The position numbers were made by a program, and so were the translations under genes. The notes below the pieces were generated by a model that worked only from the letters and a program-made list of their open reading frames with translations, had not been told where the DNA came from and did no database searches. From Paramicrosporidium saccamoebae KSL3 (Eukaryota > Fungi > Cryptomycota): a stretch of 25,769 nucleotides of DNA. The stretch lies in assembly GCA_002794465.1 (NCBI GenBank), contig MTSL01000198.1, positions 26,730 through 52,498 on the forward strand, given 5' to 3'. Below are positions 2,575 to 25,529 of this stretch, in pieces; position 1 is the first letter of the stretch, and each line of letters begins with the position of its first letter.

Positions 2575-3064
2575 TGCCAAGCTCGCGTTATTGGCGAGGG
2601 GAAGAACCACTTGAATTACATCTTCCATGTCCAATCATCGTTAATCTTACGGAACCAATCAAGTCTCTAGTCTGTCCTAAAATCTCACCAATCTGAATTA
2701 TGCTATTCAGAAACCCGCAGCACTTATCACGGAGCATCTAATTGAAGTGCTCAGGGTGTGGTCGACACAGGCTATCTATAAGAGACCGCCATTAAGATCT
2801 AATAAACAACCCGTTAGTGGGTGAACCACTTTTATTAAATTATGCGGCTTCTTTATAGATCGCCATTCTTATTATAACCAGACTGAACTGTGAGACCGCT
2901 ATCTGGGTCGAACTCGCCAATAATAAGCGGATGCTGTTTAACACAACTTTTACTATTCGATCCCACTGCGACTGCACAGAGGCCGTGCTGTGCCGGGGTT
3001 ATGGCCTACCCTGTTCCAGTATATTACAGGGGCCAAGTTCATTTGTCACACCCTGGTCTCAACG

Positions 3065-4624: not shown

Positions 4625-5067
4625 AAATAGAGATAGACATAGAGCCTCTTATATCTGGCATTTATAGAATATAAAACTACTATTCATGCGGTTCTTGTCC
4701 AAAGTTGTAGACTAGCAATCATTTCTTTTTCAGGATTCAAATAAAAATCCTCTGTGTGATAGAGCGGATTGAACAGCTGGCTGTTTGGGGATGATTTCCT
4801 AGTTTGGAAAAACCGAATAAAGACTGAGATCTATACCATTACTATTCTAGATTTATTACGCTGTTTACGAGACTGAAAGTAGGTTGATAAATTGATAATG
4901 AACGAATTTTCCTCTCGCTCCTTTCCGCCTCTTCCTGCTTGACTTTGTCTGTGGTATTTCCCCCCCCCCTCACTACGCGACAGATTCACCATTTATCCCA
5001 CACTATCCCATGCTTGTGACTCGGCATTGCCGGGGTAGGACTGCCACAGCTAGCATTTGCCACAAGA

Positions 5068-6792: not shown

Positions 6793-7017
6793 TTGAAAGC
6801 TGATTCAATTAGAAATAATAGCAGTATTACTTTATTATTGTGAATGGGTATACACGATCATAAAGCACTAATAAAATATCTTGACTACATATCTCACATG
6901 TCTAGGATAATAATGTGGCGGCCACGATGAGAGCCGCAGCGTTCACATCTCCACGTGCCGGGCTTGTATCCTGAAAGATTGCAGGGGCTATTTCCATCTA
7001 GCAGGCCGCTTTCAACC

Positions 7018-8883: not shown

Positions 8884-9073
8884 TTGAAAATCGATATCAT
8901 TAGAGATAATAAAAGTGTTGCTCTATTCTTTTGAATGGATATACACGATCAACAAGCCCTAATAAAATCCCTCGCCTACACACCTTGCAACAGCATTCAT
9001 TGTGTACTGAAGCTATTTCCATCACATCAGCAGAGAGCCAGGGGTGCTTGAATTCAACAAGCTGTTTTTAGCC

Positions 9074-10900
9074 ATGGCCAAACTTGCTCTCTTGAATTTG
9101 TTATTCATATCATCTGCCGTAGTCAGTTGCTCTAAAATCTCTGCCAAGAAGAGTTTGACTTTTGGCAACCGTGAATATCCTCCGAGCAATTTCCCAGTAA
9201 GATCCAGGTCTCACACCCTAGGCACCCATAACGACAAGGCTCGAGTCGAAAATAAGGTACCCATTCAACTTGATGAAATACGGGTCACGCGCAGTTCGGC
9301 TCGTGGCAATACTAGATATCCTCCAACGAGACCACTAGCGAAATTGGATCTCGATACCCTAAGCACCAGTAACGGCAAGACTCAAGTCGAAAAAAAGTTA
9401 TTCACTCAACCTACTGAAAAACGAGTCACACGCAGTTCGACTCGGGGCGATACTAGATATTCTCCAAAGGATCCACCAGCAAAATCCAATCTTAATACCT
9501 CAGGCCCCCGTGCTAGCAAGCCCCACAACGAAGGCGAATCCAAGAAAGTCAAGAGAGGCAGAAATGGCTTCTCTACAAGGAGGTATCCAAGAAAACCCTT
9601 GAGGCGTTCTAATACACTGATTGAACAACCCATCCCCGCAACAGTCATCCAAGAAATGCACGGATCAGGTGCTTCCATCAGCAGCCCTTTATCTACTGTC
9701 CTTGGTACGTTGCTAGACGCTCCCGTAGTGACTGCTACAGTCGTTGATCCACTAGTGATGCATAGGTTCAATTATGCCACCATTTCCATTTTGGAAGACA
9801 ATTCTGTGTCAACCCTCCCACATCCCCTCTATAAATTCAAGGGATCTACAAGATTGATTGTCAAAGACATTCACAACGGAAAAATAATCTTTGCTGACAA
9901 TTATATGACCGTGCTTTACTTATCCGAGAGCCAGATTGTCATCCTGGTCATCCCTGATACGCATGTAGAGGTAAGAGAGATTGTCAATCAGGTTTACCAG
10001 AATGGTCTGATCATGGTAAACGACATGTTCCCACAACTTGGTCTGTCGGGAATGGTTATCAAAGTTGGCGCTATCACCTGTGCACAGCACGTGAAGGGGC
10101 CTTTGTCATTCTTTGTAAACCAGAATGAGCTTACCTCTGACTTTAATTGGACTGTTCTCAATCCCGAGCAAGTATGGGCACATGACGATGCTGACAAAAT
10201 CCATATAAATGTCCAGAGGGAACATCCGCCTTCCCCCCAGACCCAATCTGTTGGACAGCAGAACAACGAAGAGCCGATTCCAAGTCTACCGAGACAAATG
10301 GTAGAGCCAGACCAAAGCTTAAAACTGCTTGAGCAGCGAATTGCCCGGATTATTGAAAAGTTCAAGGAGCAGCCCAGTCCATTTTCGGAGGAGCCTGTGC
10401 CAATCTTGGAGGAGCCTAGTCCGCTCTTGAAACAGTCTGCCCCGTGCTTGGCCGGTAACTTCCAGAGCGCGTTCCACTCTTACAAGGTCGAAACTCAATT
10501 CAAAGTCTCTGAGCATCCTTATGGAACACTTTTTTCTGGAGAAGAATACCGAGTCCTGTTGGCCTCTGTCGGGCGCGATATTGCTGTTCTCGTCATGGAA
10601 GAGGAGAGCATAGATGCGGAAACTACCTTGGAGAGAGTTTTCAAGGACGGGCTACTTGCAGTCAACGGTGATGTTGCAGGTCTTTCTGGAATCCTCATCA
10701 GAGAGCAATCGCCAAAAGGGGTAGAATTTGTAAAAGGACCACTCTCTGTAAGAGTCGGTGGTAAGAATTTGACAAATGTCACCCTACCCGAGTTTCAGAG
10801 TTTTCTGGTGCGCCGTGTTAGTGATTCAAAAGGCAAATTCAGCTTGGTACTTAGAAGATCGTATCGCTACTTCCAAGGTCCGCATGCTACGGTAGTTTAA
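9074..10900 (+). CDS. Array gene D: putative secreted protein with basic N-terminal region and two copies of the family domain (608 aa)
   Basis: ORF-track start 9044 is GTG; ATG at 9074 gives signal peptide MAKLALLNLLFISSAVVSCS. Domain copies YKFKG..IHNG..VKGPL and SYKV..SGEEYRVLLASVG..VKGPL. Confidence 0.88.
   Translation: MAKLALLNLLFISSAVVSCSKISAKKSLTFGNREYPPSNFPVRSRSHTLGTHNDKARVENKVPIQLDEIRVTRSSARGNTRYPPTRPLAKLDLDTLSTSNGKTQVEKKLFTQPTEKRVTRSSTRGDTRYSPKDPPAKSNLNTSGPRASKPHNEGESKKVKRGRNGFSTRRYPRKPLRRSNTLIEQPIPATVIQEMHGSGASISSPLSTVLGTLLDAPVVTATVVDPLVMHRFNYATISILEDNSVSTLPHPLYKFKGSTRLIVKDIHNGKIIFADNYMTVLYLSESQIVILVIPDTHVEVREIVNQVYQNGLIMVNDMFPQLGLSGMVIKVGAITCAQHVKGPLSFFVNQNELTSDFNWTVLNPEQVWAHDDADKIHINVQREHPPSPQTQSVGQQNNEEPIPSLPRQMVEPDQSLKLLEQRIARIIEKFKEQPSPFSEEPVPILEEPSPLLKQSAPCLAGNFQSAFHSYKVETQFKVSEHPYGTLFSGEEYRVLLASVGRDIAVLVMEEESIDAETTLERVFKDGLLAVNGDVAGLSGILIREQSPKGVEFVKGPLSVRVGGKNLTNVTLPEFQSFLVRRVSDSKGKFSLVLRRSYRYFQGPHATVV
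9281..9465 (+). repeat. Internal duplication, 141-nt (47-aa) period: RVTRSSARGNTRYPP / RVTRSSTRGDTRYSP
   Basis: cgggtcacgcgcagttcggctcgtggcaatactagatatcctcc at 9281 and cgagtcacacgcagttcgactcggggcgatactagatattctcc at 9422. Confidence 0.85.
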
Positions 10901-11198
10901 AAATAGAAGTAGACATAGAGCCTCTTATAGTTTCCACTCATATAGAATATAAAAGACACTGGTGACAGTAACAATTGCACACTTCTGCTTGGAAATTAGG
11001 ATCACTTTTGTGGCATAAGGGCTCTCCCACCTACGTAAATAAACTTTTATTGCACATGCCTAACGAGAGAGCTGATGAGGGTACTCTTTACTTTGATCAT
11101 ACTGCAATTAGATATTGTCACTCCTTAAATTCGAATCAGTCCACCATGTATCACGGTATTGCCAGGGCAGGAGTTTTGCAACTAGCGCTGGCCACGAA

Positions 11199-11870
11199 AT
11201 GCTGAAACAAACTCTGCTATGCTTGCTTCCCCTTTCTTTTATTAGCATTCATTGCGCCAAGTCTGGCATTGCAAATAGCTCTAGCTGGCCAATTCAATCT
11301 CATTCCATACAAAAGACAGGGTCGCCACAATTTGACTTTTCAGGAAGCTTTGACGAGGCAGATTATTCTTTCAAAGGTTCCACGCTTCTTCTTCCCGTCG
11401 ATATTCCTAACGGATTGACATTTTTGGCTGAAAAACAATGGATCGTTTTCCATTCCCATAGAAACCAAATGGCCATCGTGGTCATTTCAAGATATCTCAA
11501 TCGGACTGAAATTTTGAACAGTATCAACATTCACGGCCTGAATGGGCTATGCCGCCTGCGCCCTGAATACAATTTATCAGGATTGGTTATCAGAAATTAT
11601 TTGGGCAGTCAACTGCAATACGTGCCTGGACCTCTAACTTTTTCTATAGACGGAGAGAAACTCACAGACGGATTTGATTGGAATTTTCTCAACTTTGAGC
11701 TGCTGCGCGTCTATCATTTGGAGAAATCTCTGCAAGTCACGGTTTGGAATAGATGGCAGCGATTTTCTCCGATTCAGCTGATCCCAGTAATGACTCCCGA
11801 ATCGATCCAAGAGCCAATCCAAGAGTTAGTCCGAGATCTGTCTGAAGAATCCCGGGTGTTTAGAACGTAG
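11199..11870 (+). CDS. Array gene E: putative secreted single-domain member (223 aa)
   Basis: ATG 11199, signal peptide MLKQTLLCLLPLSFISIHCA resembling gene B. One domain YSFKGSTL..IPNG..LSGLVIRNY..VPGPL..FDWNFLNF, closest to the second domain of B. Confidence 0.85.
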   Translation: MLKQTLLCLLPLSFISIHCAKSGIANSSSWPIQSHSIQKTGSPQFDFSGSFDEADYSFKGSTLLLPVDIPNGLTFLAEKQWIVFHSHRNQMAIVVISRYLNRTEILNSINIHGLNGLCRLRPEYNLSGLVIRNYLGSQLQYVPGPLTFSIDGEKLTDGFDWNFLNFELLRVYHLEKSLQVTVWNRWQRFSPIQLIPVMTPESIQEPIQELVRDLSEESRVFRT

Positions 11871-12280
11871 AGGATCGCTTACCTGGGTATAAGCATGTGT
11901 TCCGAATGGGCACTTGGGTGGCTGACGAGGTTGCGTCACTGCGCACGGCCCTGGTCATGTAAAGTAACCTTTTACGCCTATCCTCGCCAACACCTTGGCA
12001 TTATATCTAACTACAAGTCTATTTGCGAGATGGCTCTACTAAAAGATGCAAAATAATGAGTTGATCATTGCAAGGTCTATTGATAATAATAGATTACTTG
12101 CATCGATGATAATCAGACGGAGTCATCTTAGTATGGCCACATATTGGCAAGTCTATACAATAGCTTGTTCGTTATAATCTCCAACACGAGACATGTGCGT
12201 GATCATCTTTCCACTACGCGACGCGGATATGCATGCTTTGTATACCCCAAAGTTACATGTCTCTACTTTATTCTGCAATT

Positions 12281-12309
12281 TCAGCTCAGCTCAGCCCAGC
12301 TCGGCTCGG
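12281..12309. repeat. Pentamer microsatellite (TCAGC)3 CCAGC TCGGC TCGG
   Basis: Read directly; lies immediately upstream of TATAAAAG. Confidence 0.85.
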
Positions 12310-12310
12310 A

Positions 12311-12328
12311 TATAAAAGGGCACCGGGG
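12311..12328 (+). promoter_or_regulatory. Putative core promoter of the snoRNA (TATAAAAG plus ACCGGGG)
   Basis: Consensus TATA box about 30 nt upstream of the first snoRNA stem, followed by the RCCRGGG motif also seen upstream of most secreted genes. Confidence 0.55.
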
Positions 12329-12339
12329 TCGTTGGGGTG

Positions 12340-12475
12340 GATATGCGTTCTCACTTTAGCCTGTTCCCGTTGCAGTGGGAACGGGGCCATTCAGGACGCA
12401 TAGAACAATATCCCGTTGATTCGCTAACACTACGAACCAACATGAGTAGAGTTTGATAGTAACCTCGGGACAGAC
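12340..12475 (+). ncRNA. Box H/ACA snoRNA with two LSU rRNA pseudouridylation guide pockets
   Basis: Hairpin 1: ATGCGTTCT (12343-51) pairs AGGACGCAT (12393-401), upper stem CCTGTTCCC/GGGAACGGG. H box AGAACA at 12402-07. Hairpin 2: CCCG/CGGG lower stem, AACACTAC/GTAGAGTT upper stem. ACA at 12470-72. Pocket 1 (CACTTT + CATTCAG) is complementary to conserved LSU rRNA CUGAAUG-UC-AAAGUG, with the pocket top 14 nt from the H box. Pocket 2 (TTCGCT + GATAGTA) is complementary to LSU UACUAUC-U-AGCGAA. rRNA sequences are recalled, not looked up; the 5' end is approximate. Confidence 0.85.
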
Positions 12476-12634
12476 AAGTAGTAAAATCATACATTCTATT
12501 GGTCACGAGACTGTCCTGTTATATAAATTTGGAAATGGCAATGAGGGGGCCTCGGAGTTGTTGGCAAAGTAGAGTTGTTGACAGGACGGGTGTAGTTTGC
12601 AATCACAATTTGCACTTGTAGTCTAGACTGAATC

Positions 12635-15105
12635 ATGCTCGTTATTCGCCGGATTAACCAGTGGACAGTTACCCGTTATCGCACTCTCCATTGTCGCGTT
12701 TCTCTCGGTAGCCCTTCTCCATGCCGCATTTCCCTCCTCCGGCGGCTGTCCACTTCGCTTCCACCACCACAGCAACGTCGTCGTCGAGAGGAGGTCAGCA
12801 CCACACAGCCCAATCCGCTACATCGACTGAGACTGCGGACGGTGCGGGCGACGGAGAATAAGGTTGACTTTGGGGATGTACGCAGTTTCCCGTACGGAAT
12901 GGATGCGACAGTGTGGAGTGAATGGGTGGATGTGGCCCGCGGTACGATGACGCAGGATGGACGACCGTTCCGCTTATCAAAGGACCTGCGGGGTCGACCG
13001 CCAATTACGCCGGCACTACTACTGGCCTACACAGGAACACACGGGGAAGTGTTGCTAAAGACAGTGGCTATGGGTCTGGCCAAAGCTCTGGCAGCCGATT
13101 TCCTGGCCATCAATGCAGTAGAATTTGCGGCCATCATTGCCGCATTGAATACTGAAAGTCGGACGATGCGTGGAATGCCCCCCAAAACCGATTCGACAGA
13201 CGAATCACTTGTAGAATTTGTTGGAAACGAAACACTGTTCAGCGGCAGTCCAATGCGGACAGCCTTTTTCAATCGTCCCACCTCTATGGCACTTCGCTAT
13301 GCAGAACACTTTATGACGGGACTGGACGGCGCCGCCTCCCGACGAGTGATTTACGTGCAAACTCCACTGGGACTCTTCCAACACGGACCGATATTGGCAG
13401 AGGTGGCTGAAATGCTGACCGCTCGACGAAACAAAGAGACGGGAACGCTCTTTATCTTTTCAGAGGGCGACCAATACGATCCCGTCAGTCCCAAAGGACT
13501 CTTTGACCTTTCCATGACGATGGACCCCAAAGCGCCGCTGGGCGAGCCGCTTAAGGCGTTGATCGATCCCTCCGCCATGGGCTCTACCGACATGACTGAG
13601 AGCGACGGTATCTTTTCGTGGATGATTGACAGTCGTTTGCGGGCGCCGCGGATTGTTGTCTCGCCGCCAGAGGATGCACAGGCCTTAAGACAGCATCAGA
13701 GTCAAATCAACAAGGATCAGTCCCTCTCCATCTTTATTGATAATTATTCAGGCATCCTCTCCCGACTTCAGGAGCTTTCGGCAGTCGGAAATTTGTATGG
13801 CGAATTATTGTTGTCATTGCCGACGGCAAATCGGACAGAGGAAATCCGGTCCTTATTGCCATCGTTGAATCGACGAAGAATGTCAACCCAGGAAATGACG
13901 GCTTTCTGTTTGTCAGTGCCATTGCACTCGTCGCAACTTCGAGATGATCCAGTGGGTCTGTTTGCCCAATCAGTGGACCGATTTATACGTCTGCGAGAGA
14001 CTCAACAGCGCACAGTGTCCTTTCTAAAGACTAAAACGGATCCCAAGTTGGAGACGCTGACTAAGCATGAAAAACGTCTAGTTTCCTGCGTTGTCACGCC
14101 AGCCATGGTGGGCACTTCCTTTGCCGACATTGGCGCTTTGGACAGTGCCAAACGCACGCTGCATGAGCTAATCTCTCTCCGCATTCAACGTCCCGATTAT
14201 TTCTCCAAGGGTATTTTGCGGGACTGCGTTTCTGGCATTCTGCTCTTTGGTCCACCTGGCACGGGAAAGACCATGTTGGCTCGAGCTGTGGCTGCTCAAA
14301 GCGGAGCCAGTTTTATTGCCGTCAACAGCTCCTCCATATTTGACATGTACGTGGGGGAGGGTGAGAAGAATGTCAAGGTACCTGAGGGGGCATGATTAAT
14401 GCATAGGCATTGTTCACATTGGCTCGCAGATTGGCGCCATGCATTATTTTTGTTGACGAGGTTGATGCGCTCTTAGACTCGCGCGCTAATTCAGTGGGAC
14501 GGGCCAGTCGGGTGGAAATTATCAACGAATTCATGGCCGAGTGGGACGGTCTGCTCTCTCAAAATCATGGCATCACTGTCATGGCCGCTACTAACCGTCC
14601 CTATGCCCTCGATGATGCTGTTCTCCGTCGTCTCCCCCGCCGTATCCTCATTGACCTTCCCGACGCTGCTGCCCGCATGCAAATCCTTGCCCTATTGCTC
14701 AAGGACGATTTCCTTGCCGCCTCCGTTTCCCTCATGGACATTGCTCTTCGTTGCGAAAACTATTCTGGGAGCGATTTAAAGAATATGTGCATGGCTGCCG
14801 CTATGCGATCTCTCCGACGTGTTCGCGCTGTAGACACTGTTGGCGTTTCCGTGGGAATCGCTGCTAACATGTCTGCGGGGCCCACTTCTGAAAGATCCAT
14901 GAAATCTGCTGAGATGACCACAGGCTACCCCGCTGAAGTAGTCATGGAAATTACCAACGCCGACTTTGAAGGCGCCATGGCCGATGTGCCCGCCAGCATC
15001 TCTGACCGTATGGTCACTGTGCACGAGTTGCGGCATTGGGACACAATGTATGGTGAAGGACGTGTAAATAAGTCTACGGTTCAATTTGGTTTCTCTTGTC
15101 AATAG
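12635..15105 (+). CDS. MSP1/ATAD1-related AAA+ ATPase, probably mitochondrial; join(12635..14377,14407..15105), 813 aa
   Basis: Walker A GPPGTGKT, Walker B IIFVDEVD, second region of homology TNRPYALDDAVLRRLPRR. Splicing restores EGEKNVK|ALFTLARRLAPCIIF. Arg-rich, acid-free N-terminus resembles a mitochondrial presequence. Confidence 0.9.
14378..14406 (+). other. Spliceosomal intron, 29 nt (AAA ATPase)
   Basis: gtacctgagggggcatgattaatgcatag; removal joins the two halves of the AAA motif in frame. Confidence 0.92.
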
Positions 15106-15256: not shown

Positions 15257-15377
15257 GGCCTATTATTAAACTCCTGACCTAACCTAGCCCACAAAAACTA
15301 TCATGTAACTATAAAGTCTTTATTCGGATTCAGATTTAGTTTCAAAGGCGGATTCGCATTCATGGACCCAGCGCTGT

Positions 15378-15930
15378 TTAGGCAACAAGGGCCGAGGCAG
15401 AGGACGCCTCGCTACAAAAGTTAGTCATGTCCTTCGTCACTCCTTACTATTTCCAGACAGCGGGCAACATGCTAGTGCGCTTGTAGTAGCGCGCCAGACG
15501 GTGGATGCGCGATTCAATCAGAATCAGACGGTACTTACTGTCCTTGTCCTTGCGGTTGCGCTCCATGTGCTTGCGCACGGCCACAGCCTTCTTAATAAGA
15601 CAATACAAGTCTTCGGGGATTTGGGGAGCCAATCCTAACGCATTAGGGACCCGAACCAACCCTACCATGAGCGCGCAGCAGACGCACAATCTTTCCTCCA
15701 GTCAAGCACTTAAGCTGACCGATTCCGTGCGAGTCACGCAGCACTGAACCAATCTGCGATGGGGTCAGACCCTTCTTCGCCAGCTTGCAGATGAGCTCGG
15801 TAGCCTCGTCCGTGCTAGTCTTGAGCCAGGTTGGCGCGCGACGCGAGTACGGGATCGAAGAACCCGAGATACCCTTACTACACCATTAGTCGGGATGGAT
15901 GTCGTACCCAGAAGTGTGCATACGACCCAT
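15378..15930 (-). CDS. RPS13: 40S ribosomal protein S13 (uS15); exons 15908-15930, 15666-15877, 15448-15634, 15378-15411; 151 aa
   Basis: Spliced protein [27 protein letters not shown]...[10 protein letters not shown]...[52 protein letters not shown]...[13 protein letters not shown]. Exon sum 456 nt = 151 aa + stop. Confidence 0.98.
15412..15447 (-). other. Spliceosomal intron 3 of RPS13, 36 nt
   Basis: gtaaggagtgacgaaggacatgactaacttttgtag; branch CTAAC; restores WK-Y-EASS. Confidence 0.93.
15635..15665 (-). other. Spliceosomal intron 2 of RPS13, 31 nt
   Basis: gtagggttggttcgggtccctaatgcgttag; restores AH-G-LAPQIP. Confidence 0.93.
15878..15907 (-). other. Spliceosomal intron 1 of RPS13, 30 nt
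   Basis: gtacgacatccatcccgactaatggtgtag; restores TS-G-KGIS. Confidence 0.93.
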
Positions 15931-16544
15931 CTTGGATTAGCAAAAAATTAGAGGTCTTGACCAGGGTTGGACCTCAGGATAAAGAACAATAAAGAAATTA
16001 ATTTAGTATTGTAATGTCGCGTAATGGGAAAGATGCCATGGGCAAATTCACCGACACGTGGTGGGCGAACTCGCATTTAAGGGGTGGCAATATCTACTTG
16101 TAGCACGATCGGATAAAATAATTCGCTCTACTCACGACGTTCTACCCAACAAGAACAACTCTCGCTTAAAGTGCCACAATAGTGAGTCCCTGCATGTAGG
16201 CTACTGTATTGCCACATGGCAGTCACTACCACATCACACACAGAACTTTTTGTTCATTGCTGATCCAACAGTACATTTCTAGTCTCGAAAAAACGTATGA
16301 ATTCTAAAATAACATTGAAATCAATCGTCCCATTTCTCGCCTCTGGCTCTTCTTTCCGTGTTTAGACAAATACCCAGCTAAACATCCCACTAATTTACAC
16401 AATAGCCGGCCATCCTGCTTAGAGCAAATCCTACTTGGACCCTTACTTTACTGCAAGGCGAATACTCCAGCCCATACGGTCTTCGGTAAATTAAAGCCGT
16501 GGATGTAGAGACCAGTGCCAGGGATCAGTAGCGCTAAATTAAAC

Positions 16545-19500
16545 ATGCTGCCATCGTGCCTTCTCCTGCAGATACTCAAGTACTGCACGGCACATGGTAC
16601 GAGCTGCAAGGATTCGGTTGAGAGGCTTAATGGAGGCACCTATAGCGCAGCGATAGAAGTTGGTGAAGACTGGGACCGTTGTCGTTCTGTATTCTTTGAG
16701 AATGCATCAAGTAGCGGAGCTTCATTGTTCCTCACGGCCTTGGACGAAGGCTCCTGGGCAGCTACAGGACAAATCGCCCAAGATGTGGCCAACACGGAAG
16801 AATTTGCCGGTAAGGTCAATATCGAGCAGCTCAAGATCTTGACTACTCACGGTGCCACCATATCTTCACAGTTCTTTGCAAAAGTGTCGGATATCGAGGA
16901 TTTCGGTGGGCCGTCAATCAATAATGCAGATTTTCCGAAGAATATATTGGAATATTACAATGGTCCTATGCGTGATACCTCCTGGATGACTGCAGAACAG
17001 TTCAAATTGTTTGGAAGCAAGCTTGGCAAGACGATTCTATGCACGAAACTGGTGGGCTCTTCGATCAGCGCTGGCCTCCTTGCTTCTATCAGTCTGGAAT
17101 GCTTTCGTGGCCTTATTCAATCAAAGTCATCATTCGGCACCTGGTCCAGTTTCTGTCCAGGAATGATTGCAGATTGGCTTAATCACATCGAAGAAGATTT
17201 CCAGCATGTCAACCCCGATAACTATCAGTGTTTGCCGACGAGTGTGTGGCAGGAAGTACTAGGATCGCCTACACTTTTGGAATTTGTGCCGGACAATCAG
17301 TACAACCTGGAAAGCCCCAATCTGTTCAAGGTCTCATTGTCGAAAATTGGACACGTCCGATTTGCAGAAATCGTGAGACAACGTCCCAATGTGGCACTGA
17401 GTGTTATACGTATGCCTATACCCGAGTTGCCAGTCGACATCTTTGCCAGCTGTGGGAAAGAGGAAATGAAGTCTTTAACACGTCGATTTCTGACTCCACA
17501 TCTCTGGAAAAACCCAGAGATTATTGGGAACATTAGCAGTGCTGTAGATGATGACAAACACTTTTGCAACGGCATGGACGCCGAGACATACCACGACCTA
17601 ATTTGGTTGCGTGCAAACTGCAGTGCCAAGTGTCGTTCGTTTATATCGGTCCCAGACGGCTATGACAAAGAGAAGCTTCCAGAACTAGTCGACGGTGGGT
17701 CAATCTGGGACTCGCATGTGGCACAGATCAAGGCTAACCATTTACCTGATATACGCACTACCGGCCTGTTAATAGCCTCACGGAGTGAATTCTGTGAGCT
17801 GATGGCGGAAAAGGTGAGCAGCGATGAATTAGAGAATTTAGATAGTATCGCCCTTGGAATGATTGGTGCCAAGTGTGCCTTGGCACTAAAGTCACTCATT
17901 ACAAGGGAGGTTGCCCAGAAACTTAGATCACTTACTTTCCGACTGTTCACGGCTGATGACTTTAAGCTCAAAATGGCTGATATTACTCTCGATCAAATAG
18001 AGCACTTGTCTAAAAGCGTTCCGAAGGAGTCTAGTGTATTCACTAAAATCGAGACAGCTGAACTTTTGGAATATAGCAACAATATTCTCAGTGTCCTTAC
18101 GGATTCACAAATTGGTGCAATACAGGTGAAACCGGAGTATCTCAATTGGATTTCATTCCGAAGACAAGCTGCTCGACTGCTAAAAGAGATGCAGCAAGAC
18201 GATTTGAAAAAATTATTCGAATCGTGTCTCGCCTTTAAAGGTAAAGAAACTCTCGGCTTTGAGCACAAGGAATGTGCAAATGTGCTCTCAGGGATTATTC
18301 TTAATCTCTCAGGCCCCAACTGGGAATCTTCTGTGGGTTTTCTGTTCAACGACACTAATCTTCACTCGCTGCTGTACGAGTTGCTCAGTAAAGAAACCTT
18401 GCTTAAACTAATCCAAAAATCCACATTCAACTCAGCCGAGGATTTCAAACTAAAGCATGATGGACGGAAATACAATTTGGCACACTCCCTTCAAACGATA
18501 AGAGAATCACATCAATCATTGTCCAATCCACAGTCGACAATTTGTCATTCTGGTGTTACTGGGGTGGGTCCCCTTCGTGGCTGGCTTGGGGATTTGCTGG
18601 ATACAATGAAGACTAATATGGTTTCTAATACTGATGACATATATGCGTCCATTCAGAAATTCAAATTTCCCATTAAGGGAGTCGATGGCCCGCCGGCGGG
18701 GTTCCTGGCTGGAAAGGCGATGCAGAAAAAATTGAAACTCCCGTTTGCTCTAGATCCCAAGTTCTATGAACTCATTCTCAATGAGAATGACGATGAAACT
18801 GAGACATACTTCAAAACGACCTACGCGGAAGAATTGAGGGTGTTTAGGGACAATAATCTCTATCAACGTGTGACAAGCAATAGCTTCAAACTCACACACG
18901 AACAAAAGGACCAAGTGGAGCAGATTAAGCGGGAAGCATCTATGACTCCCTGTGAAAAAACAAAGGCTATAGAGAGAGTAAGGAACAAAGCATGGTTTGA
19001 AAGTAACAGGAATGATTTCGGTTGGGCGCCATTAAGCGAACTAACATTTAATGGATTCGAGAACACTAGCAACTACAACGACTACAGAATCCCACGTGGT
19101 GAACTCAGCTATGATGAATGGGAGGCAAAATGTGGTGCGGTATACTCGGTGTTTGAATATGAACATATGGAAGAATTCTTTGAAAAATTTAGTGCCAATT
19201 GTTTACAGGAATTCAAAACTTTTGTCAAGGGCTTCCGATCTGGGCTAGAGCTCTTTCTCAGGATGCCAAAAGCATATGTGGAAAATAAGCAGCCTTTTAC
19301 TGAAATACTTGTATCCAAAATTAACGGCGTTCCAATGACTGCAGACAAATTGTTTTCCAAAATTACAGTAAAAGCTGATGCTGACATTGCCTCTTGGTAT
19401 GGTGATGTAAAGTCTGAAGTCTTCTTCAAGGTGTTTTTGGACTGTCTGACACCGGAACAGCTGTCCAAACTTGTGGCTGTCTGGACGGGAGCTGCCTCGA

Positions 19501-19865
19501 CGGATTTGGATCGCATAAAACCAAAAATACTCTTCTACGTCCCAACGGATGGAAGTAACAAGTACAACAGTCGTGAAGCCATCGAAAATCTAGCCGCAAG
19601 CTCTGGCTCCATTGTCATTCATGGTGGCAACGAACACGAAGCCTTCCTGAGACAATTCTCGGCAAAGCTGCGGGAGGCAATGGGCTCTGACAAAGATGTA
19701 GTGGACCCGCTCAGTGACGGCAACGAGCATGTCGAGTTCTATCCGAGTGTGAACAGTGCTACTTGCTTTTCAGAACTGAAATTTCCACTACAACATTCTC
19801 GAATGCTGCTTGAAGCGCTCATTTGGCTTTTAAACGACGACCCAAGCAGTCTTTCTGACCGTTAA
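16545..19865 (+). CDS. Putative secreted protein with divergent C-terminal HECT-type E3 ligase domain, paralog 1 (1106 aa)
   Basis: ATG 16545 (track start 16515 is GTG); short hydrophobic leader MLPSCLLLQILKYCTA. HECT-ordered motifs: GVGPLRGWLGDLL, GFLAGKAMQKKLKLPFALDPKFYELIL, EFKTFVKGFRSGL, FFKVFLDCLTPEQLSKLVAVWTG, PSVNSATCFSELKFP (Cys codon 19764-66, 32 residues before the C-terminus). Confidence 0.8.
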   Translation: MLPSCLLLQILKYCTAHGTSCKDSVERLNGGTYSAAIEVGEDWDRCRSVFFENASSSGASLFLTALDEGSWAATGQIAQDVANTEEFAGKVNIEQLKILTTHGATISSQFFAKVSDIEDFGGPSINNADFPKNILEYYNGPMRDTSWMTAEQFKLFGSKLGKTILCTKLVGSSISAGLLASISLECFRGLIQSKSSFGTWSSFCPGMIADWLNHIEEDFQHVNPDNYQCLPTSVWQEVLGSPTLLEFVPDNQYNLESPNLFKVSLSKIGHVRFAEIVRQRPNVALSVIRMPIPELPVDIFASCGKEEMKSLTRRFLTPHLWKNPEIIGNISSAVDDDKHFCNGMDAETYHDLIWLRANCSAKCRSFISVPDGYDKEKLPELVDGGSIWDSHVAQIKANHLPDIRTTGLLIASRSEFCELMAEKVSSDELENLDSIALGMIGAKCALALKSLITREVAQKLRSLTFRLFTADDFKLKMADITLDQIEHLSKSVPKESSVFTKIETAELLEYSNNILSVLTDSQIGAIQVKPEYLNWISFRRQAARLLKEMQQDDLKKLFESCLAFKGKETLGFEHKECANVLSGIILNLSGPNWESSVGFLFNDTNLHSLLYELLSKETLLKLIQKSTFNSAEDFKLKHDGRKYNLAHSLQTIRESHQSLSNPQSTICHSGVTGVGPLRGWLGDLLDTMKTNMVSNTDDIYASIQKFKFPIKGVDGPPAGFLAGKAMQKKLKLPFALDPKFYELILNENDDETETYFKTTYAEELRVFRDNNLYQRVTSNSFKLTHEQKDQVEQIKREASMTPCEKTKAIERVRNKAWFESNRNDFGWAPLSELTFNGFENTSNYNDYRIPRGELSYDEWEAKCGAVYSVFEYEHMEEFFEKFSANCLQEFKTFVKGFRSGLELFLRMPKAYVENKQPFTEILVSKINGVPMTADKLFSKITVKADADIASWYGDVKSEVFFKVFLDCLTPEQLSKLVAVWTGAASTDLDRIKPKILFYVPTDGSNKYNSREAIENLAASSGSIVIHGGNEHEAFLRQFSAKLREAMGSDKDVVDPLSDGNEHVEFYPSVNSATCFSELKFPLQHSRMLLEALIWLLNDDPSSLSDR

Positions 19866-20153
19866 CTCTCTGTGGACCCCGAATGTGATAGAGTGGCAAA
19901 GAATTAAAGAAAAGTGGCCAGTCATAACAAGAATAAATGGTCTTAATAAACGGCCATGTCAAACAGGGCTATTGATTTGTAGTTGGCGGGAGGATGTAGT
20001 CGAGCGCGGGGAAACTAATGTCCCGCCATCCAAGTTGGAGTATACTAAGTAAAATCTGTTTAGATCCTTGCTTTATGACTCACAGGCTCGTAATATTTAT
20101 GTCTTCAGCCAATCAAAGTCATTGTTGTAGTTACCAGTACCGGGGTTAACAAC

Positions 20154-23100
20154 ATGTTATCCATGCTGCCACTATACCTTCTCCTGCAGATACTTCAGTA
20201 CTGCACGGCCAGCAGCGTTGACTGCAAAGCATTAATTGAAGGGCTTGATAGGAATGAACACGAAGCACCAAAGGACATTATCGAGAACTGGGATCATTGC
20301 AGTTCTACATTTCTAGGGAGTACGACAGAGCAAGGTGTTTCAGCGTTCTTAAATTTCATGATGTCACAACTAAAGGAGATTATGATTGATAGTTACAAAG
20401 GTGTGACCAGCACGGAAATGGGTAACAGGTCGGAAGAAGAGATAAAATCGGCGTTATTCCGAGACTGGAAGTCACGCTTTAATGTATCTATAGAAGGGAT
20501 TACTCAAGATATGGCCAACACGGAAGACTTCGCCAGTAAACTTGAAGTTGAATATTTCGAAATGCTGTTGGATTTGGGGTTCACCCCATCTTCCAGAAGC
20601 TTTGCACAAGTGAAGCGTATTCGTGAGTTTCAGCCCCCACCAGGTAAGGGCTCAGGCTTGCCAGAGAATATCTTGGAATATTGTGATGGCCTGATGCGCA
20701 CAGACTGGGTGGCCCCGGAACAGTTCAAATTACTCGGTAGCAAGCTTGAAAAAGATTTGCTATGCACGGATGTGGAAGGTTACGGGATCGACGTCAGCCT
20801 TCTTGCTGTCATTAGCTTAAAGTGCTTTCGTGGCCTCATAAGATCGAGTGTCTCATTCCCAGCCCCCCATAAATGGTCTGTCATCTGCCCAGAAACGATT
20901 AACGAATGGATTAGCTATCTCGAGGAAGATTTTCAACATGTCAAGCCTGAAAACTATCCGTCCTTGCCGATCAGTGTGTGGCAAAACGTATTAAAGTCGT
21001 CTGCACTTTTGGATCTCGCAATGAAGAATGATCCTGACCTTGACGTGAGACTATCCAATATTATCAATGTCCCATTGTCCGAAATCGGACATGTCCGATT
21101 CGCAGAGATTGCAAGACAACACCCCAATGTGGCTAGAGGGCTTTTTATCACATTTTCATCCAATTTTCCTGCTGATATTCTTGCCAGTTGTGGAAAAGAA
21201 GAAGTTAAGGCTTTGGAATTGAAGCTTAGAGTTATAGAGTTATCAAAAAAGCCAGAGGTTATTGAGAACATGGGTACTGCTGTGGATGATGACCGACACT
21301 TTTGCAAAGGCATGGACATTGGTACGTACGCCACAAAAACGTGGCTGCGCATGCACGGCAGCGACAGGTGTCGTTCGCTCATATCGGTCCCAGATGGCTA
21401 TGACAAAAAGGACCTTCCAGAACTAGCGAACGAAGGGCCAATTTGGGAATCGCAGCTATCACAGATCAGAAATAACCTCATCCCGAAAACTGCCACAATC
21501 ATTCCACTGATAACATCACGAAAGGAATTTTGTGAGCTGATGGCAGAGAGAATCGACAACAATGAGCTGGAGAACTTTGACGACTACGTACTTCGGGCTA
21601 TTAATAACAAGTGTGCCCTGGCGCTAAAGTCACATATCACAAGGAGTGTAGCTAAGATGCTTGGTGACTTTGCTTTCCGATTGTTCACGGCTGATGATTT
21701 CCAACTCAAATTGGCCGATATTTCCAGCAAGCAAGCGAGTCATCTATCTGAAGGTGTTTCGAACGAGCTCAGTGCGTTCGCCAAGATTGATGTGCTTGAT
21801 CTTTTGAACTGCAGTGATGATACCTTTTACACTCTTACGGATTCCCAGATAGATATAATTCAAAAGGCACCAGAATATACTGATTGGATTGCATTCCGAA
21901 GACAGGCTGCCCAATTGCTGCGGGACCCGCACCTACAGCCAGGCGGTTTGAATACTGCTTTTGATACGTGTCACGGCTTTAAAAGCAATGAGACTCTCGG
22001 CTTTGAGTACAAAGAATGCTTTGATGTGCTCGCTAGGATTATTCCTAGACTGGAAGACGACTACCGTGCCAAGGAGATGAACAATCTGTTAAATAACGCC
22101 AGTCTTCAATCGTTGTGGGATGAGCCTCTTGGTAAGAAGGCTCTATTTAAAGTAATGATGAGGACCTCATTTCCCTGGAACCAGGAGTTTGTTTTGCCAC
22201 ATGATGGAAAGAGATATGATATGGCCAAATCTCTTAAAGCTATAAGAAAATCATCCAAGACGTTGGCCAACCCACATTCAAAAGTGCGCCATCGTGATAC
22301 TGTCGGAGAGGGTCCCCTCCGTGCCTGGCTTGGAGAGCTGCTGGGCACAATGAAGGATAACATGATTGCTAATCTTAGCGACGTGGATGGATCGATTCAG
22401 AAGTTCAAATTCCCCATCCGGGGAGACGATGGACCGACTGCTGGGTTCCTGACTGGAAAGGCGATGCAACAGGGATTGAGACTCCCTTTTGCTCTGGATC
22501 CCAAGTTTTATGAACTCATTTTCAATGAAAAGGAGGACGAGATTGAGACATATTTTAAAACGACCTACGCGGATGAATTGAGTGTGTTTAGGGATCAAAA
22601 TCTCTATCAGCGTGTGATGGGCGATAGCTTTGAGCTCACGCCTGAGGAAGTAGAACAGATTGGACAAGCCCAACTCAAGACTCCCGAGGCGATGGAGGAG
22701 GCACGTAATAAGGCGTGGTTCAATCGTAACAAAGAGGATGCTTGTTGGGCTCCATTGGACAAACTGACATTCAATGGATTTGAGAGCCAAACCAATTACA
22801 ATCTCTACGAAATTCCACGAGAAGGACTCGGCCTTGAGGAGTGGTTCACAAAATGTGAAGCAGTCTACTCGGGATTTGAGTATGAAACCATGAAAGACTT
22901 CTTTGAAGAGTTTAGTGCCAAGTGTTTACAGGAATTCAAGACCTTTGTCAAAGGTTTCCGATCCGGGCTGGAAACTTTCCTCATTAAGGAAATACCACTA
23001 TTGGAGAACAAGCAAATTGTCCCAGACTTGCTTGTATCTGTGATCAACGGCTTCCCGATGACAGCGGAGCTCTTGCTTTCCAAGATTAGAATGGGGGCTG

Positions 23101-23603
23101 GTGCGGACATTGATTCATGGTATGGGACAGTAAAGCCTGAAGTATTCTTCAAGACGTTTTTGGAATGTCTGACTCCGAGGCAGCTGTCCAAACTTGTGGC
23201 CGTCTGGACGGGAGCTGCCTCGACGGAATTGAATGACAACCAACTGAAGCTATTTTTTTACAAGCCTGAGGACTATCACGTCACGTTTGACAGCTGTGAT
23301 GCCAGTGAAAAATTGTGCGCAAAGTCCAGATCCGTTGTCATCCATAGCGGCGACGAACACGAGTCATTTCTGAGACAGTTTTCGGCAAAGCTGCGAGATG
23401 CAGTGGATACAGATAAAGAAGTAGTCGATCCACTCAGCAATGGCGAAAAGTGTGTTGATTTCCATCCGAGTATTGGAAGTGCCACCTGCTTTATGTTCAT
23501 AAAATTGCCGGAGCAGGACGCCAGAAGGACTATTGAAGCACTCGTTGGACTGCTGAACGCCGATCCGAGCGATCTTTATGACGCCCCTCCCCCCCGAGTA
23601 TGA
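20154..23603 (+). CDS. Putative secreted protein with divergent C-terminal HECT-type E3 ligase domain, paralog 2 (1149 aa)
   Basis: Leader MLSMLPLYLLLQILQYCTASS; collinear with paralog 1 along nearly its whole length. Motifs GEGPLRAWLGELL, GFLTGKAMQQGLRLPFALDPKFYELIF, EFKTFVKGFRSGL, FLECLTPRQLSKLVAVWTG, PSIGSATCFMFIKLP (Cys codon 23487-89). Confidence 0.8.
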   Translation: MLSMLPLYLLLQILQYCTASSVDCKALIEGLDRNEHEAPKDIIENWDHCSSTFLGSTTEQGVSAFLNFMMSQLKEIMIDSYKGVTSTEMGNRSEEEIKSALFRDWKSRFNVSIEGITQDMANTEDFASKLEVEYFEMLLDLGFTPSSRSFAQVKRIREFQPPPGKGSGLPENILEYCDGLMRTDWVAPEQFKLLGSKLEKDLLCTDVEGYGIDVSLLAVISLKCFRGLIRSSVSFPAPHKWSVICPETINEWISYLEEDFQHVKPENYPSLPISVWQNVLKSSALLDLAMKNDPDLDVRLSNIINVPLSEIGHVRFAEIARQHPNVARGLFITFSSNFPADILASCGKEEVKALELKLRVIELSKKPEVIENMGTAVDDDRHFCKGMDIGTYATKTWLRMHGSDRCRSLISVPDGYDKKDLPELANEGPIWESQLSQIRNNLIPKTATIIPLITSRKEFCELMAERIDNNELENFDDYVLRAINNKCALALKSHITRSVAKMLGDFAFRLFTADDFQLKLADISSKQASHLSEGVSNELSAFAKIDVLDLLNCSDDTFYTLTDSQIDIIQKAPEYTDWIAFRRQAAQLLRDPHLQPGGLNTAFDTCHGFKSNETLGFEYKECFDVLARIIPRLEDDYRAKEMNNLLNNASLQSLWDEPLGKKALFKVMMRTSFPWNQEFVLPHDGKRYDMAKSLKAIRKSSKTLANPHSKVRHRDTVGEGPLRAWLGELLGTMKDNMIANLSDVDGSIQKFKFPIRGDDGPTAGFLTGKAMQQGLRLPFALDPKFYELIFNEKEDEIETYFKTTYADELSVFRDQNLYQRVMGDSFELTPEEVEQIGQAQLKTPEAMEEARNKAWFNRNKEDACWAPLDKLTFNGFESQTNYNLYEIPREGLGLEEWFTKCEAVYSGFEYETMKDFFEEFSAKCLQEFKTFVKGFRSGLETFLIKEIPLLENKQIVPDLLVSVINGFPMTAELLLSKIRMGAGADIDSWYGTVKPEVFFKTFLECLTPRQLSKLVAVWTGAASTELNDNQLKLFFYKPEDYHVTFDSCDASEKLCAKSRSVVIHSGDEHESFLRQFSAKLRDAVDTDKEVVDPLSNGEKCVDFHPSIGSATCFMFIKLPEQDARRTIEALVGLLNADPSDLYDAPPPRV

Positions 23604-23918: not shown

Positions 23919-24764
23919 TCATTTTTTAAAGACGACAAGAGCAGAAAGGACAGATAGTGCCAAGAGTGCAAGTGAAATGATGAACCAAAGAATACCATAT
24001 ACAAAGGCGGGGATGAGGACACTACATCTGTGAGCAAACACATAGGCATCGGATCCTTCAATGGTATTAAAGACGGTGGCATTAAGGATGCTCAGGATGG
24101 ACTGGACACTGGCAATGGCACCCAGAAAGAGGATCACATGGCGGGTAAAGGCACCGTCCTTGAACATAAAGGCAAATCCTAGCAGGGCCGTCAATCCAAG
24201 GGAGGAGAGGATTGTAAACAGACCGGATGAGAAGAACAGTGTCACCAGCAAGATCAGAATGACAATGACAGCCGACCATTTTGCCGTTCGATGTCCAAAC
24301 GCCATAAACACCAACAGAGCACCGATCAGCGTGCTGCCGATATAGCCAGCGGGCAGGATGAGACAGAGCCAGCCCCCAGAGAAGCGCGTAGCTCCAGATT
24401 CATCGAAATTAATGTTTATACTCCCCATGCGAGCGCCTGTAAGCCAGCACATGAGTGCATGTCCAAACTCGTGGAAAATGGTAGAGAGAATTGCAAATGG
24501 AAACAGTATCAGTCTGGTCACTCGGAACTGGTAGCAGGCTGTGATCAGGACGAGCTGTGCCGCTAGCAGGCCGAGGATGGTCCACTGTTCCTTGGTTGGG
24601 TGCAGACGACGGGCCCATTTCGAACGCCGCCCAACGAGGAGGGGCGACCGGGCAACTCCATATCCATGCAGCTCCATCTCGTCGTCCTTGCCGCTGTCGG
24701 GAAGGAGGGCCAGCCGACTAGTCCAGCCAGAGAGCGTCTTTTGGAAGTCCTTCCACTTGCCCAT
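23919..24764 (-). CDS. Peptidase M50B-like polytopic membrane zinc metalloprotease (~281 aa)
   Basis: HEFGH zinc motif in a hydrophobic helix, SGATRFSGG, PAGYIG, downstream SDA motif and several transmembrane segments. Start placed at MGKWKDF (24764); the ORF-track extension to 25232 is antisense to Rab1. Confidence 0.85.
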   Translation of the reverse strand: MGKWKDFQKTLSGWTSRLALLPDSGKDDEMELHGYGVARSPLLVGRRSKWARRLHPTKEQWTILGLLAAQLVLITACYQFRVTRLILFPFAILSTIFHEFGHALMCWLTGARMGSININFDESGATRFSGGWLCLILPAGYIGSTLIGALLVFMAFGHRTAKWSAVIVILILLVTLFFSSGLFTILSSLGLTALLGFAFMFKDGAFTRHVILFLGAIASVQSILSILNATVFNTIEGSDAYVFAHRCSVLIPAFVYGILWFIISLALLALSVLSALVVFKK

Positions 24765-24856
24765 TGGACCCCGCCCGCCAATCAGCACGCATCTGCCTAA
24801 CAACGCATAAATCAATTTAGCGCGATTAACTCGCTCGTTTACAACGGTTGGTTGGG
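24765..24856. promoter_or_regulatory. Putative 92-nt bidirectional promoter (M50B-like gene / Rab1)
   Basis: Divergent ATGs at 24764 (-) and 24857 (+); contains GCCAATCA, and a GGG run lies within a few nt of each ATG on its sense strand. Confidence 0.55.
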
Positions 24857-25529
24857 ATGAGTCAGGAATAGTACGACTGGTGGCAGTGGTGTTGAATATA
24901 GCGATTACCTGTTCAAGCTTCTGCTGATTGGCGACTCGGGCGTAGGAAAGTCGTGTCTGCTGCTGCGTTTTGCCGACGACACGTACACCGAGTCCTTCAT
25001 CAGCACCATTGGAGTGGACTTTGTACTCTGTCGAAGTGAACGGACTAATGTGTAGAAAATTCGCACAATCGAGTTGGAGGGACGTACGGTCAAGTTGCAG
25101 ATTTGGGACACGGCTGGCCAGGAGCGTTTCCGGACTATCACTAGCAGCTATTACCGCGGCGCCCATGGCATCATTGTGGTGTACGATGTAACCGACGCGG
25201 ACACCTTTTCCAACGTCAAGACGTGGCTGCAAGAGATTGACCGCTACGCCTCAGAGGGAGTCAATAAGCTGTTGGTGGGTAACAAGTCAGACCTCGCCCC
25301 CAAACGTCAGGTGGAGTTTGCCACGGCAAAGGAGTTTGCTGACCGATTGGGTGTGCCGTTCCTGGAGACAAGCGCCAAAAATTCGACAAATGTGGAACAA
25401 GCCTTTCTGACAATGGCAAAGCAAATTAAGGATCGGGTGGGAGCACAGCAGCTGAGTGCCACGGCCGGCCGTGTGAATCTGCCTGCCAGCGGGACAAAGG
25501 TGGAGCAGCCCTCTGGCGGGTGTTGCTAA
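24857..25529 (+). CDS. YPT1: Rab1/Ypt1 small GTPase; join(24857..24870,24902..25022,25056..25529), 202 aa
   Basis: [83 protein letters not shown]...NKSD...ETSAK...GGCC. Exon sum 609 nt. Confidence 0.98.
24871..24901 (+). other. Spliceosomal intron 1 of Rab1, 31 nt
   Basis: gtacgactggtggcagtggtgttgaatatag; restores E-Y-DYLF; no clear YTRAY branch site. Confidence 0.88.
25023..25055 (+). other. Spliceosomal intron 2 of Rab1, 33 nt
   Basis: gtactctgtcgaagtgaacggactaatgtgtag; restores IGVDF|KIRT; in-frame TAG if retained. Confidence 0.93.

Follow-up and report, generated by a model that had tools for sequence, protein, structure and literature searches.

A tandem pair of leader-bearing HECT-like proteins from Paramicrosporidium saccamoebae, candidates for ubiquitin ligases exported into the host

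To our knowledge, HECT ubiquitin ligases are viewed as enzymes confined to the cytosol or the nucleus, and the HECT mimics known to be delivered by pathogens are bacterial and unrelated to them in sequence. Two adjacent genes of the fungus Paramicrosporidium saccamoebae KSL3 raise the question of whether a eukaryotic parasite may export true HECT homologues into its host. The genes lie in a 25,769-nucleotide (nt) stretch of contig MTSL01000198.1 (assembly GCA_002794465.1, positions 26,730 to 52,498 of the forward strand), which is referred to below as the window and whose first nucleotide is position 1. A preliminary description of this DNA had proposed that both genes encode signal-peptide-bearing HECT ligases acting inside a host cell, which would fit the genome of an intracellular parasite. 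The source of the DNA agrees with the latter point: P. saccamoebae is an intranuclear parasite of the amoeba Saccamoeba and is sister to the Microsporidia, with a genome of 7.3 Mb, 46.9% GC, and 3750 predicted genes (PMC5701793). The GC content of the window agrees with the genome value. As judged from their sequences, the two proteins are good candidates for enzymes that are delivered to the host and subvert the ubiquitin system there.

Both open reading frames (ORFs) are intact and encode, as described earlier, tandem intronless paralogs of ~1100 amino acids (aa); over the full length, the two proteins share 52% identity (Table 1). This similarity is far beyond chance, since two further close paralogs, PSACC_03654 and PSACC_02888, are encoded in the same genome and 65 relatives were found by a profile search (see below). 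The two genes, annotated as hypothetical proteins only, arose by tandem duplication and belong to a lineage-specific family found in P. saccamoebae and in uncultured relatives of this species. The best conserved part of the close paralogs is the HECT core (58 to 70% identity), whereas residues 17 to 90 are 31 to 35% identical. All the HECT-like motifs quoted in the preliminary description are present in both proteins and in the order given there. In paralog 1, they begin at residues 673 (GVGPLRGWL), 719 (GFLAGKAM), 732 (LPFALDPKFY), 890 (FKTFVKGF), 964 (FLDCLTPEQLSKLVAVWTG), and 1071 (SATCF); their counterparts in paralog 2 begin at residues 718, 764, 777, 928, 1002, and 1109. The number of residues that follow the cysteine of the last motif is exactly 32 in paralog 1 (Cys1074), as had been counted, and 37 in paralog 2 (Cys1112).

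The order of these motifs, described earlier as that of HECT, is insufficient alone, as single sequences of the family remain under the Pfam gathering threshold. The gathering score of the Pfam HECT family (PF00632) is 23.9 bits, paralog 1 scores 12.4 bits [expectation value (E)=0.12], and its isolated C-terminal domain scores 14.9 bits. No match to Pfam HECT was obtained with full-length paralog 2, and none at E<=0.01 in seven distant full-length relatives. Weak matches are present in all four close paralogs, with a best E of 2.3e-4. Searches of PDB sequences with a single protein or with a profile of the four paralogs found nothing. A C-domain alignment was then built from 16 sequences, including relatives collected by profile search that, outside the close group, are 17 to 23% identical to paralog 1. 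Its profile matched almost exclusively solved HECT ligases among PDB sequences, the best being AREL1 (E=1.6e-5 and 3.5e-5) and TOM1 (1.4e-4), followed by SMURF1/2, HUWE1, UBR5, and HECW2. Collinear blocks are shared with these solved HECTs: IDxGGPxRxW, GKAxQ, LTxxQLxxLxxxWTGS, and a cysteine block that falls on (H)TCFN.

Structure prediction followed by Foldseek, which the preliminary description had recommended, gave the same picture. An AlphaFold2 model calculated from the four-paralog alignment had a predicted local distance difference test score (pLDDT) of 44.7 and was discarded; the model from the 16-sequence alignment reached a pLDDT of 80.7 and a predicted template modelling score of 0.77. 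When the latter was compared to the PDB, the top 50 matches were all HECT ligases (best E=4.5e-4, probability up to 1.00), among them Smurf1, Smurf2, UBR5, HUWE1, Tom1, HECTD3, TRIP12, E6AP, AREL1, and NEDD4. The domain of the family is ~100 residues longer than canonical HECT domains. The extra stretches are located at residues ~775 to 870 of the N-lobe (~95 residues) and ~1000 to 1060 of the C-lobe (~70 residues), in paralog 1 numbering. Overall, the profile and the model identify the C-terminal ~465 aa as a true, very divergent HECT domain with the catalytic cysteine in place.

The cysteine of the family is aligned with the catalytic cysteine within the (H)TCFN of AREL1 and TOM1. A lack of this residue in close orthologs had been named as a sign against the proposal. 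In the 16-sequence alignment, however, the column of Cys1074 is one of only six that are invariant, and, of the 42 relatives covering the position, 37 have the cysteine. The preceding residue is nearly always T, S, or A across the family and is His in one relative only. The SATCF of the pair, which had been read as a possible sign of altered activity or of a decoy when set against HTCF, is thus weak evidence, because His is rare in the whole family. Several active canonical HECTs also have no His before their catalytic cysteine. Near the C-terminus, the family conserves LN.P...(F/L/M/I/Y).D. Position −4 from the end, where a conserved Phe is characteristic of HECT ligases, is Leu in paralog 1 (...SSLSDR), and the tails of paralog 2 and PSACC_03654 are longer.

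The second part of the question concerns the N-termini. The short hydrophobic leader with a YCTA end, noticed earlier in both proteins, is present and conserved. In the pair, it consists of 16 to 19 aa, with a hydrophobic core (h-region) of 10 to 13 residues and a c-region (K/Q)YCTA, which puts Cys at −3 and Ala at −1 of a plausible cleavage site. Taken alone, the leader is no more than suggestive of a signal peptide. It is kept in all four close paralogs, where its identity is 50 to 81%, and in environmental homologues; the LLLQxLxYCTA form is also found in close metagenome homologues (P0005-P0009, P0044). A hydrophobic leader stands at the start of nearly all 36 family N-termini listed, with many classical signal peptides among them, e.g., MRVAPVLFIVIIGGAFFCSA and MKVQLLALLLLSCSIHTDQA. 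Three relatives (P0039, P0045, and P0065) have no obvious leader. Directly after the leader, a conserved mature start, (D)[W/C]xxLxxxLN...NW, is found in both window proteins and in roughly a dozen relatives, which puts the window leader at the position of the signal peptide. Neither protein of the pair has KDEL or HDEL at its C-terminus, and hydropathy analysis found no strongly hydrophobic transmembrane-like segment in either. We consider the leader most likely to be a cleaved signal peptide.

An upstream exon that removes the leader from the N-terminus had been mentioned as a way in which the proposal could fail. Introns in neighbouring genes measure 29 to 37 nt, begin with GTAnG, and carry a CTAA(T/C) branch site located 7 to 9 nt before the AG; those of the ATPase and ribosomal-protein genes listed in Table 1 define a very short, stereotyped intron type of the P. 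saccamoebae genome. No upstream coding exon was obtained from any candidate intron with this GTAnG...CTAA(T/C)...AG signature. The frame of paralog 1 is interrupted by TAG at 16506-16508, 12 codons upstream of the start, and is open from 16509 only; in paralog 2, an in-frame TAA is found at 20091-20093, 21 codons upstream of the ATG. A CCAAT-containing element, GTCTTCAGCCAATTAAAG, is conserved ~45 to 60 nt before the ATG across all four close paralogs and is probably a shared, noncoding promoter or 5′ untranslated region element. Although the DNA upstream of the ATG is conserved, indels of 4 and 3 nt separate the paralogs between this element and the ATG, and the stretch is therefore noncoding. 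With in-frame stops, indels that are not multiples of three, and no intron bearing the signature, an upstream exon is not supported.

Two apparent splice sites near the start were rejected. The annotation of PSACC_02888 takes the CAG of the GTCTTCAGCCAATTAAAG element as a 3′ splice site and has an upstream exon; this exon is not conserved, and the upstream stretch contains stops and indels that break the frame. The sequence CTTCTCCTGCAG, which lies in the leader codons, also resembles a 3′ splice site, and here, too, there are upstream stops, indels other than multiples of three, and no fitting intron.

The ~620-residue N-terminal domain (N-domain) that follows the leader has no family in Pfam and is probably the target-binding part. 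Five of its cysteines (Cys166, 186, 341, 363, and 444 in paralog 1 numbering) are at least 90% conserved at ~22% sequence identity, a pattern typical of disulfide-stabilised extracytoplasmic domains. In a subfamily of 750- to 820-aa proteins, the N-domain stands alone: an N-terminal leader precedes it, and it is followed by a C-terminal transmembrane segment and a short basic tail. Type I membrane proteins are built in this way, and the N-domain would thus be located outside the cytosol. The P. saccamoebae proteins P0027 (PJF19829.1) and P0031 (PJF18592.1), both named "Proteinase (Secreted protein)" in GenBank, have it fused to alpha/beta-hydrolase (S33-like) domains, and the relative P0041 has it fused to a PGAP1-like domain. 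Some relatives contain two or three internal repeats of it. The N-domain is thus a mobile module. In paralog 1, residues ~450 to 545 (window 17890-18180) have an 11-residue LTxxQIxxLS-like periodicity. The only PDB match of the N-domain profile, the artificial repeat protein HeliScrew4 (9zem, E=6.6e-6; random-sequence repeats), was dismissed as a periodicity artefact and not taken as homology.

The pair named in the preliminary description proved to be part of a larger family. A search of 5.8 billion proteins returned only four sequences: the window pair, PSACC_03654 (1168 aa, with the automatic UniRef label "HECT domain-containing"), and PSACC_02888 (partial, cut by a contig end). The word-index homologue search gave just two metagenomic fragments with the 16-sequence alignment and only P0032 with P0074; the word index misses this HECT-like family. 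Searching 1.84 billion representative proteins with a profile yielded 65 relatives, 44 of them at E<=1e-10. P. saccamoebae itself has at least six HECT-like members, namely, the four close paralogs and PSACC_02458 and PSACC_02459, which share one 11.8-kb contig. Another tandem pair with the same HECT-like domain, at 6054-9485 and 10001-13108, is carried by contig Ga0377238_001373 (L003) of JGI metagenome 3300036987, which comes from an uncultured, compact eukaryote whose DNA is gene-dense, with long uninterrupted ORFs and 45% GC. The proteins of this pair have clear signal peptides and an N-terminal domain unlike that of the window pair; the tandem arrangement resembles that of PSACC_02458/02459 and suggests a Paramicrosporidium-like organism. 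The recurring architecture is a leader, a variable N-domain, and a divergent HECT domain, with repeated tandem duplication.

From the architecture, the homology, the conserved cysteine, and the family-wide leaders, we infer the remaining steps, from leader cleavage and export into the host to the use of an E2, ligation, and the choice of targets, as follows. The leader would direct each protein into the secretory pathway of the parasite and would then be cleaved off. The parasite, growing inside the amoeba nucleus, would release the proteins into the host compartment. There, a host E2 would load ubiquitin onto the HECT cysteine (Cys1074 in paralog 1, Cys1112 in paralog 2), and the domain would pass it on to host proteins chosen by the N-domain. 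Because the parasite lives inside the amoeba nucleus, secretion would place the proteins within reach of host E1, E2, and ubiquitin. As a whole, the mechanism of secreted, host-acting HECT ligases is proposed tentatively, at slightly less than an even chance. The earlier claim of action inside a host cell agrees with the tandem paralogs, the HECT domain, the leader position, and the absence of an upstream exon, whereas export and ligase activity are the parts of it that we infer.

Several points weigh against this mechanism. That the proteins bear signal peptides holds as far as position is concerned, since the leader matches the place of mostly classical signal peptides in the relatives; the leader itself, however, is short (16 to 19 aa) and only moderately hydrophobic (maximum Kyte-Doolittle 9-residue mean of 1.8 to 2.4), has no basic n-region, and includes Gln and Tyr. 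That they are HECT ligases holds as remote homology, through the 16-sequence profile and the predicted fold, but every single sequence stays under the Pfam HECT gathering score (12.4 to 14.9 bits versus 23.9). The template modelling (TM) scores of the Foldseek matches are low (0.2 to 0.49), partly because the domain is two-lobed and has two large extra stretches. In the C-lobe, the extra stretch separates the conserved TGS block from the cysteine and may affect E2 docking; the cysteine is lost in five of the relatives that cover the position, and the catalytic thiol must survive an oxidising secretory pathway. The P. saccamoebae assembly was binned from a metagenome of the host plus its community (PMC5701793). 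Last, the distant relatives come mostly from Logan, ENA, and JGI assemblies, and restriction of the family to parasites is not established.

The alternative that survives best, although we consider it unlikely, is that the proteins act outside the cytoplasm and without ubiquitin. They would be secreted or located on the parasite surface, the spore wall, or the invasion apparatus, and the HECT-derived domain would serve other thiol chemistry or binding, with no E1 or E2 involved. In a still more unusual variant, the family might work outside any cytosol and use the HECT cysteine for chemistry unrelated to ubiquitin. A function without ubiquitin would suit a family that appears overwhelmingly leader-bearing, which is odd for an enzyme needing cytosolic partners, and an N-domain that also occurs between a leader and a C-terminal transmembrane segment. 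It would likewise suit a HECT domain that has diverged to below the Pfam threshold, has acquired two large extra stretches, and has lost its cysteine in five relatives, as well as neighbouring genes whose products look like structural secreted proteins, some of them proline-rich. On the other hand, the cysteine is kept in 37 of 42 relatives at ~20% identity and is aligned with the HECT catalytic cysteine, and conservation is highest in the most HECT-specific blocks. Furthermore, a protein secreted inside the host nucleus reaches a compartment that contains E1, E2, and ubiquitin.

It is still less likely that the pair are HECT ligases of an ordinary kind that serve the parasite itself in its cytosol or nucleus, with the hydrophobic helix being part of a folded N-domain, e.g., of an F-box-like LPxxLLxxILxY type. 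The moderate hydrophobicity of the leader and its lack of a basic n-region are consistent with this reading, as are the three relatives without an obvious leader and a conservation (50 to 81% identity) that is unusually high for a signal peptide. By eye, the leader resembles a first F-box helix (LPxxLLLxILxYC). However, no F-box profile matched the first 63 to 66 residues of the four close paralogs at E<=10. At the same position, distant relatives hold unrelated, mostly classical signal peptides that are followed by the conserved mature N-terminus, and we rejected the F-box assignment. The occurrence of the N-domain in proteins with a leader and a transmembrane segment and in the GenBank "Proteinase (Secreted protein)" entries also argues against a nonsecretory function, and so do the conserved cysteines of the N-domain and the lineage-specific nature of the family, which is not expected of a housekeeping HECT. 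Least probable of all, and indeed improbable, are secreted pseudo-ligases or decoys that bind and sequester host E2~ubiquitin or ubiquitin without catalysing transfer: SATCF in place of HTCF, the noncanonical C-terminal tail with its 32 versus 37 residues, the large extra stretch in the C-lobe, and the loss of the cysteine in some relatives would fit them, but so strong a conservation of the cysteine is not expected of a pure binder, the absence of His is the rule in the family, and the hydrophobic residue within the LN.P...(F/L/M/I/Y).D motif near the C-terminus is conserved.

The pair of candidate exported HECT ligases is preceded in the window by a lineage-specific tandem array of five or six genes, none of which has a Pfam match (Table 1). 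Each ORF of the array has an internal ATG start and a strong signal peptide, e.g., MAKLALLNLLFISSAVVSCS, and these signal peptides, too, finish in C-x-A/S. The HECT-like pair therefore sits within a cluster of leader-bearing, lineage-specific genes. The array genes have in common a repeated ~110-aa module, F.SYKG.T.F.VSEH.YGTLFSGEEYRILLASVG.DIAVL...GLSG.LIRE.SP, and some of the proteins contain proline-rich repeats (IPPLKQA.QTIPPLKQ). The array products may belong to the spore wall or the polar filament or may act as effectors. Two ORFs on the minus strand were also observed. One, at 730-2634, encodes a 634-aa protein with no Pfam match and an internal leader-like stretch, MKVVLLLIICLLQCTLVES; the other, at 23919-25232, lies immediately downstream of paralog 2, and its product is an M50B-like membrane metallopeptidase (E=4e-38).

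Table 1. Features of the gene pair and of its surroundings (window positions unless another locus is given).
Feature	Position	Strand	Remarks
Paralog 1, coding sequence	16545..19865	+	1106 aa plus stop; intron not needed; ATG 16545, stop 19863-19865
Paralog 1, hydrophobic leader MLPSCLLLQILKYCTA	16545..16592	+	candidate signal peptide; Cys at −3, Ala at −1
Paralog 1, N-terminal domain	16593..18461	+	residues 17-639; no Pfam family
Paralog 1, divergent HECT domain (predicted)	18462..19862	+	residues 640-1106
Paralog 1, Cys1074 codon (SATCF)	19764..19766	+	aligned to HECT catalytic Cys
Paralog 2, coding sequence	20154..23603	+	1149 aa plus stop; intron not needed; ATG 20154, stop 23601-23603
Paralog 2, hydrophobic leader MLSMLPLYLLLQILQYCTA	20154..20210	+	candidate signal peptide
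Paralog 2, N-terminal domain	20211..22199	+	residues 20-682; 36-residue insertion near its start compared to the other paralogs
Paralog 2, divergent HECT domain (predicted)	22200..23600	+	residues 683-1149
Paralog 2, Cys1112 codon (SATCF)	23487..23489	+	37 residues from the C-terminus
Upstream element GTCTTCGGTAAATTAAAG	16479..16496	+	degenerate copy before paralog 1; from the upstream alignment of the four close paralogs
Upstream element GTCTTCAGCCAATCAAAG	20101..20118	+	CCAAT-containing, before paralog 2; also before PSACC_03654 and PSACC_02888
Further copy of the GTCTTCAGCCAATTAAAG element	L001 ~7941-7958		
Further copy of the GTCTTCAGCCAATTAAAG element	L002 ~8176-8193		
AAA+ ATPase gene	12635-15105	+	split by a 29-nt intron at ~14379-14407 (GTACCT...GATTAAT...TAG)
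Ribosomal protein S13/uS15-like gene	~15340-15935	-	three introns, 30-36 nt
Lineage-specific tandem array	2990-11870	+	five or six genes, upstream of the pair; no Pfam matches
Array ORF	2990-4624	+	
Array ORF	5068-6792	+	
Array ORFs	6955-7710 plus 7771-8883	+	
Array ORF	9044-10900	+	
Array ORF	11115-11870	+	

What is new here is that true HECT homologues occur in a family that bears leaders and expands by tandem duplication. Our literature searches found no secreted HECT from a eukaryotic parasite, and the P. saccamoebae genome paper discusses neither secreted proteins nor ubiquitin (PMC5701793). It is possible, though on balance somewhat doubtful, that the pair represents the first HECT-type ligases known to be exported by a eukaryotic parasite into a eukaryotic host, from a previously unrecognised family of signal-peptide HECTs in Paramicrosporidium-like parasites that would act in the host nucleus with host E2s. 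If so, the proteins would provide a first molecular handle on the manipulation of the host nucleus by rozellid and microsporidia-like parasites. The family is also a natural experiment in how much divergence and how many extra residues a HECT domain tolerates while its catalytic cysteine is kept.

Compared to canonical HECT E3s (PF00632; E6AP/UBE3A, NEDD4, SMURF1/2, HUWE1/TOM1, AREL1, and UBR5), the pair has the domain at the same place, the extreme C-terminus, with collinear blocks, a predicted two-lobed fold, and a cysteine that falls on the catalytic cysteine ~32 to 37 residues from the end. As in these enzymes, a large variable N-terminal region could select substrates. Unlike them, the pair has a secretion-type leader, scores under the Pfam gathering threshold, ends in a different C-terminal tail, carries ~95 extra residues in the N-lobe and ~70 in the C-lobe, and has (S/A)(T/S)C instead of HTC. 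Its N-domain, absent from Pfam and containing conserved cysteines, and its membership in a lineage-specific, tandemly expanded family are further differences.

We know of no detectable sequence homology between bacterial HECT-like effectors and eukaryotic HECTs. These effectors, i.e., SopA, NleL, and the wider bHECT group (bioRxiv 10.1101/2023.06.05.543783), are by description alike in being pathogen proteins delivered to the host, with a catalytic cysteine in a two-lobed HECT-like domain and use of host E2s. They differ, also by description, in their dependence on bacterial secretion systems, whereas the pair consists of eukaryotic genes with remote HECT sequence homology and a leader that is probably of the endoplasmic reticulum type. 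Since the window is eukaryotic and neighbouring genes contain spliceosomal introns, membership in the SopA/NleL type is not expected. The large leader-bearing paralogous gene families of microsporidia, e.g., those of Nematocida (PMC5423893), are, by description, similar in other respects: they are lineage-specific, tandemly expanded, leader-bearing, encoded by an intracellular parasite, and proposed to be exposed to the host. The HECT-like catalytic domain distinguishes the pair from them, and no sequence relationship is claimed.

Closest in concept are the secreted RING-type E3 effectors of eukaryotic parasites, Ts-RNF of Trichinella spiralis (PMC10877949) and PbE3-2 of Plasmodiophora brassicae (bioRxiv 10.1101/2022.10.26.513834). 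As proposed for the pair, a parasite-secreted E3 acts in these cases on host proteins via the host ubiquitin machinery. Ts-RNF and PbE3-2 differ in being RING-type adaptors without a covalent ubiquitin intermediate, whereas the pair, known from sequence, is of the HECT type and has a catalytic cysteine. If the proposed export is true, HECT homologues would constitute a new class among secreted E3 effectors, which so far are of the RING type in both Trichinella and Plasmodiophora.

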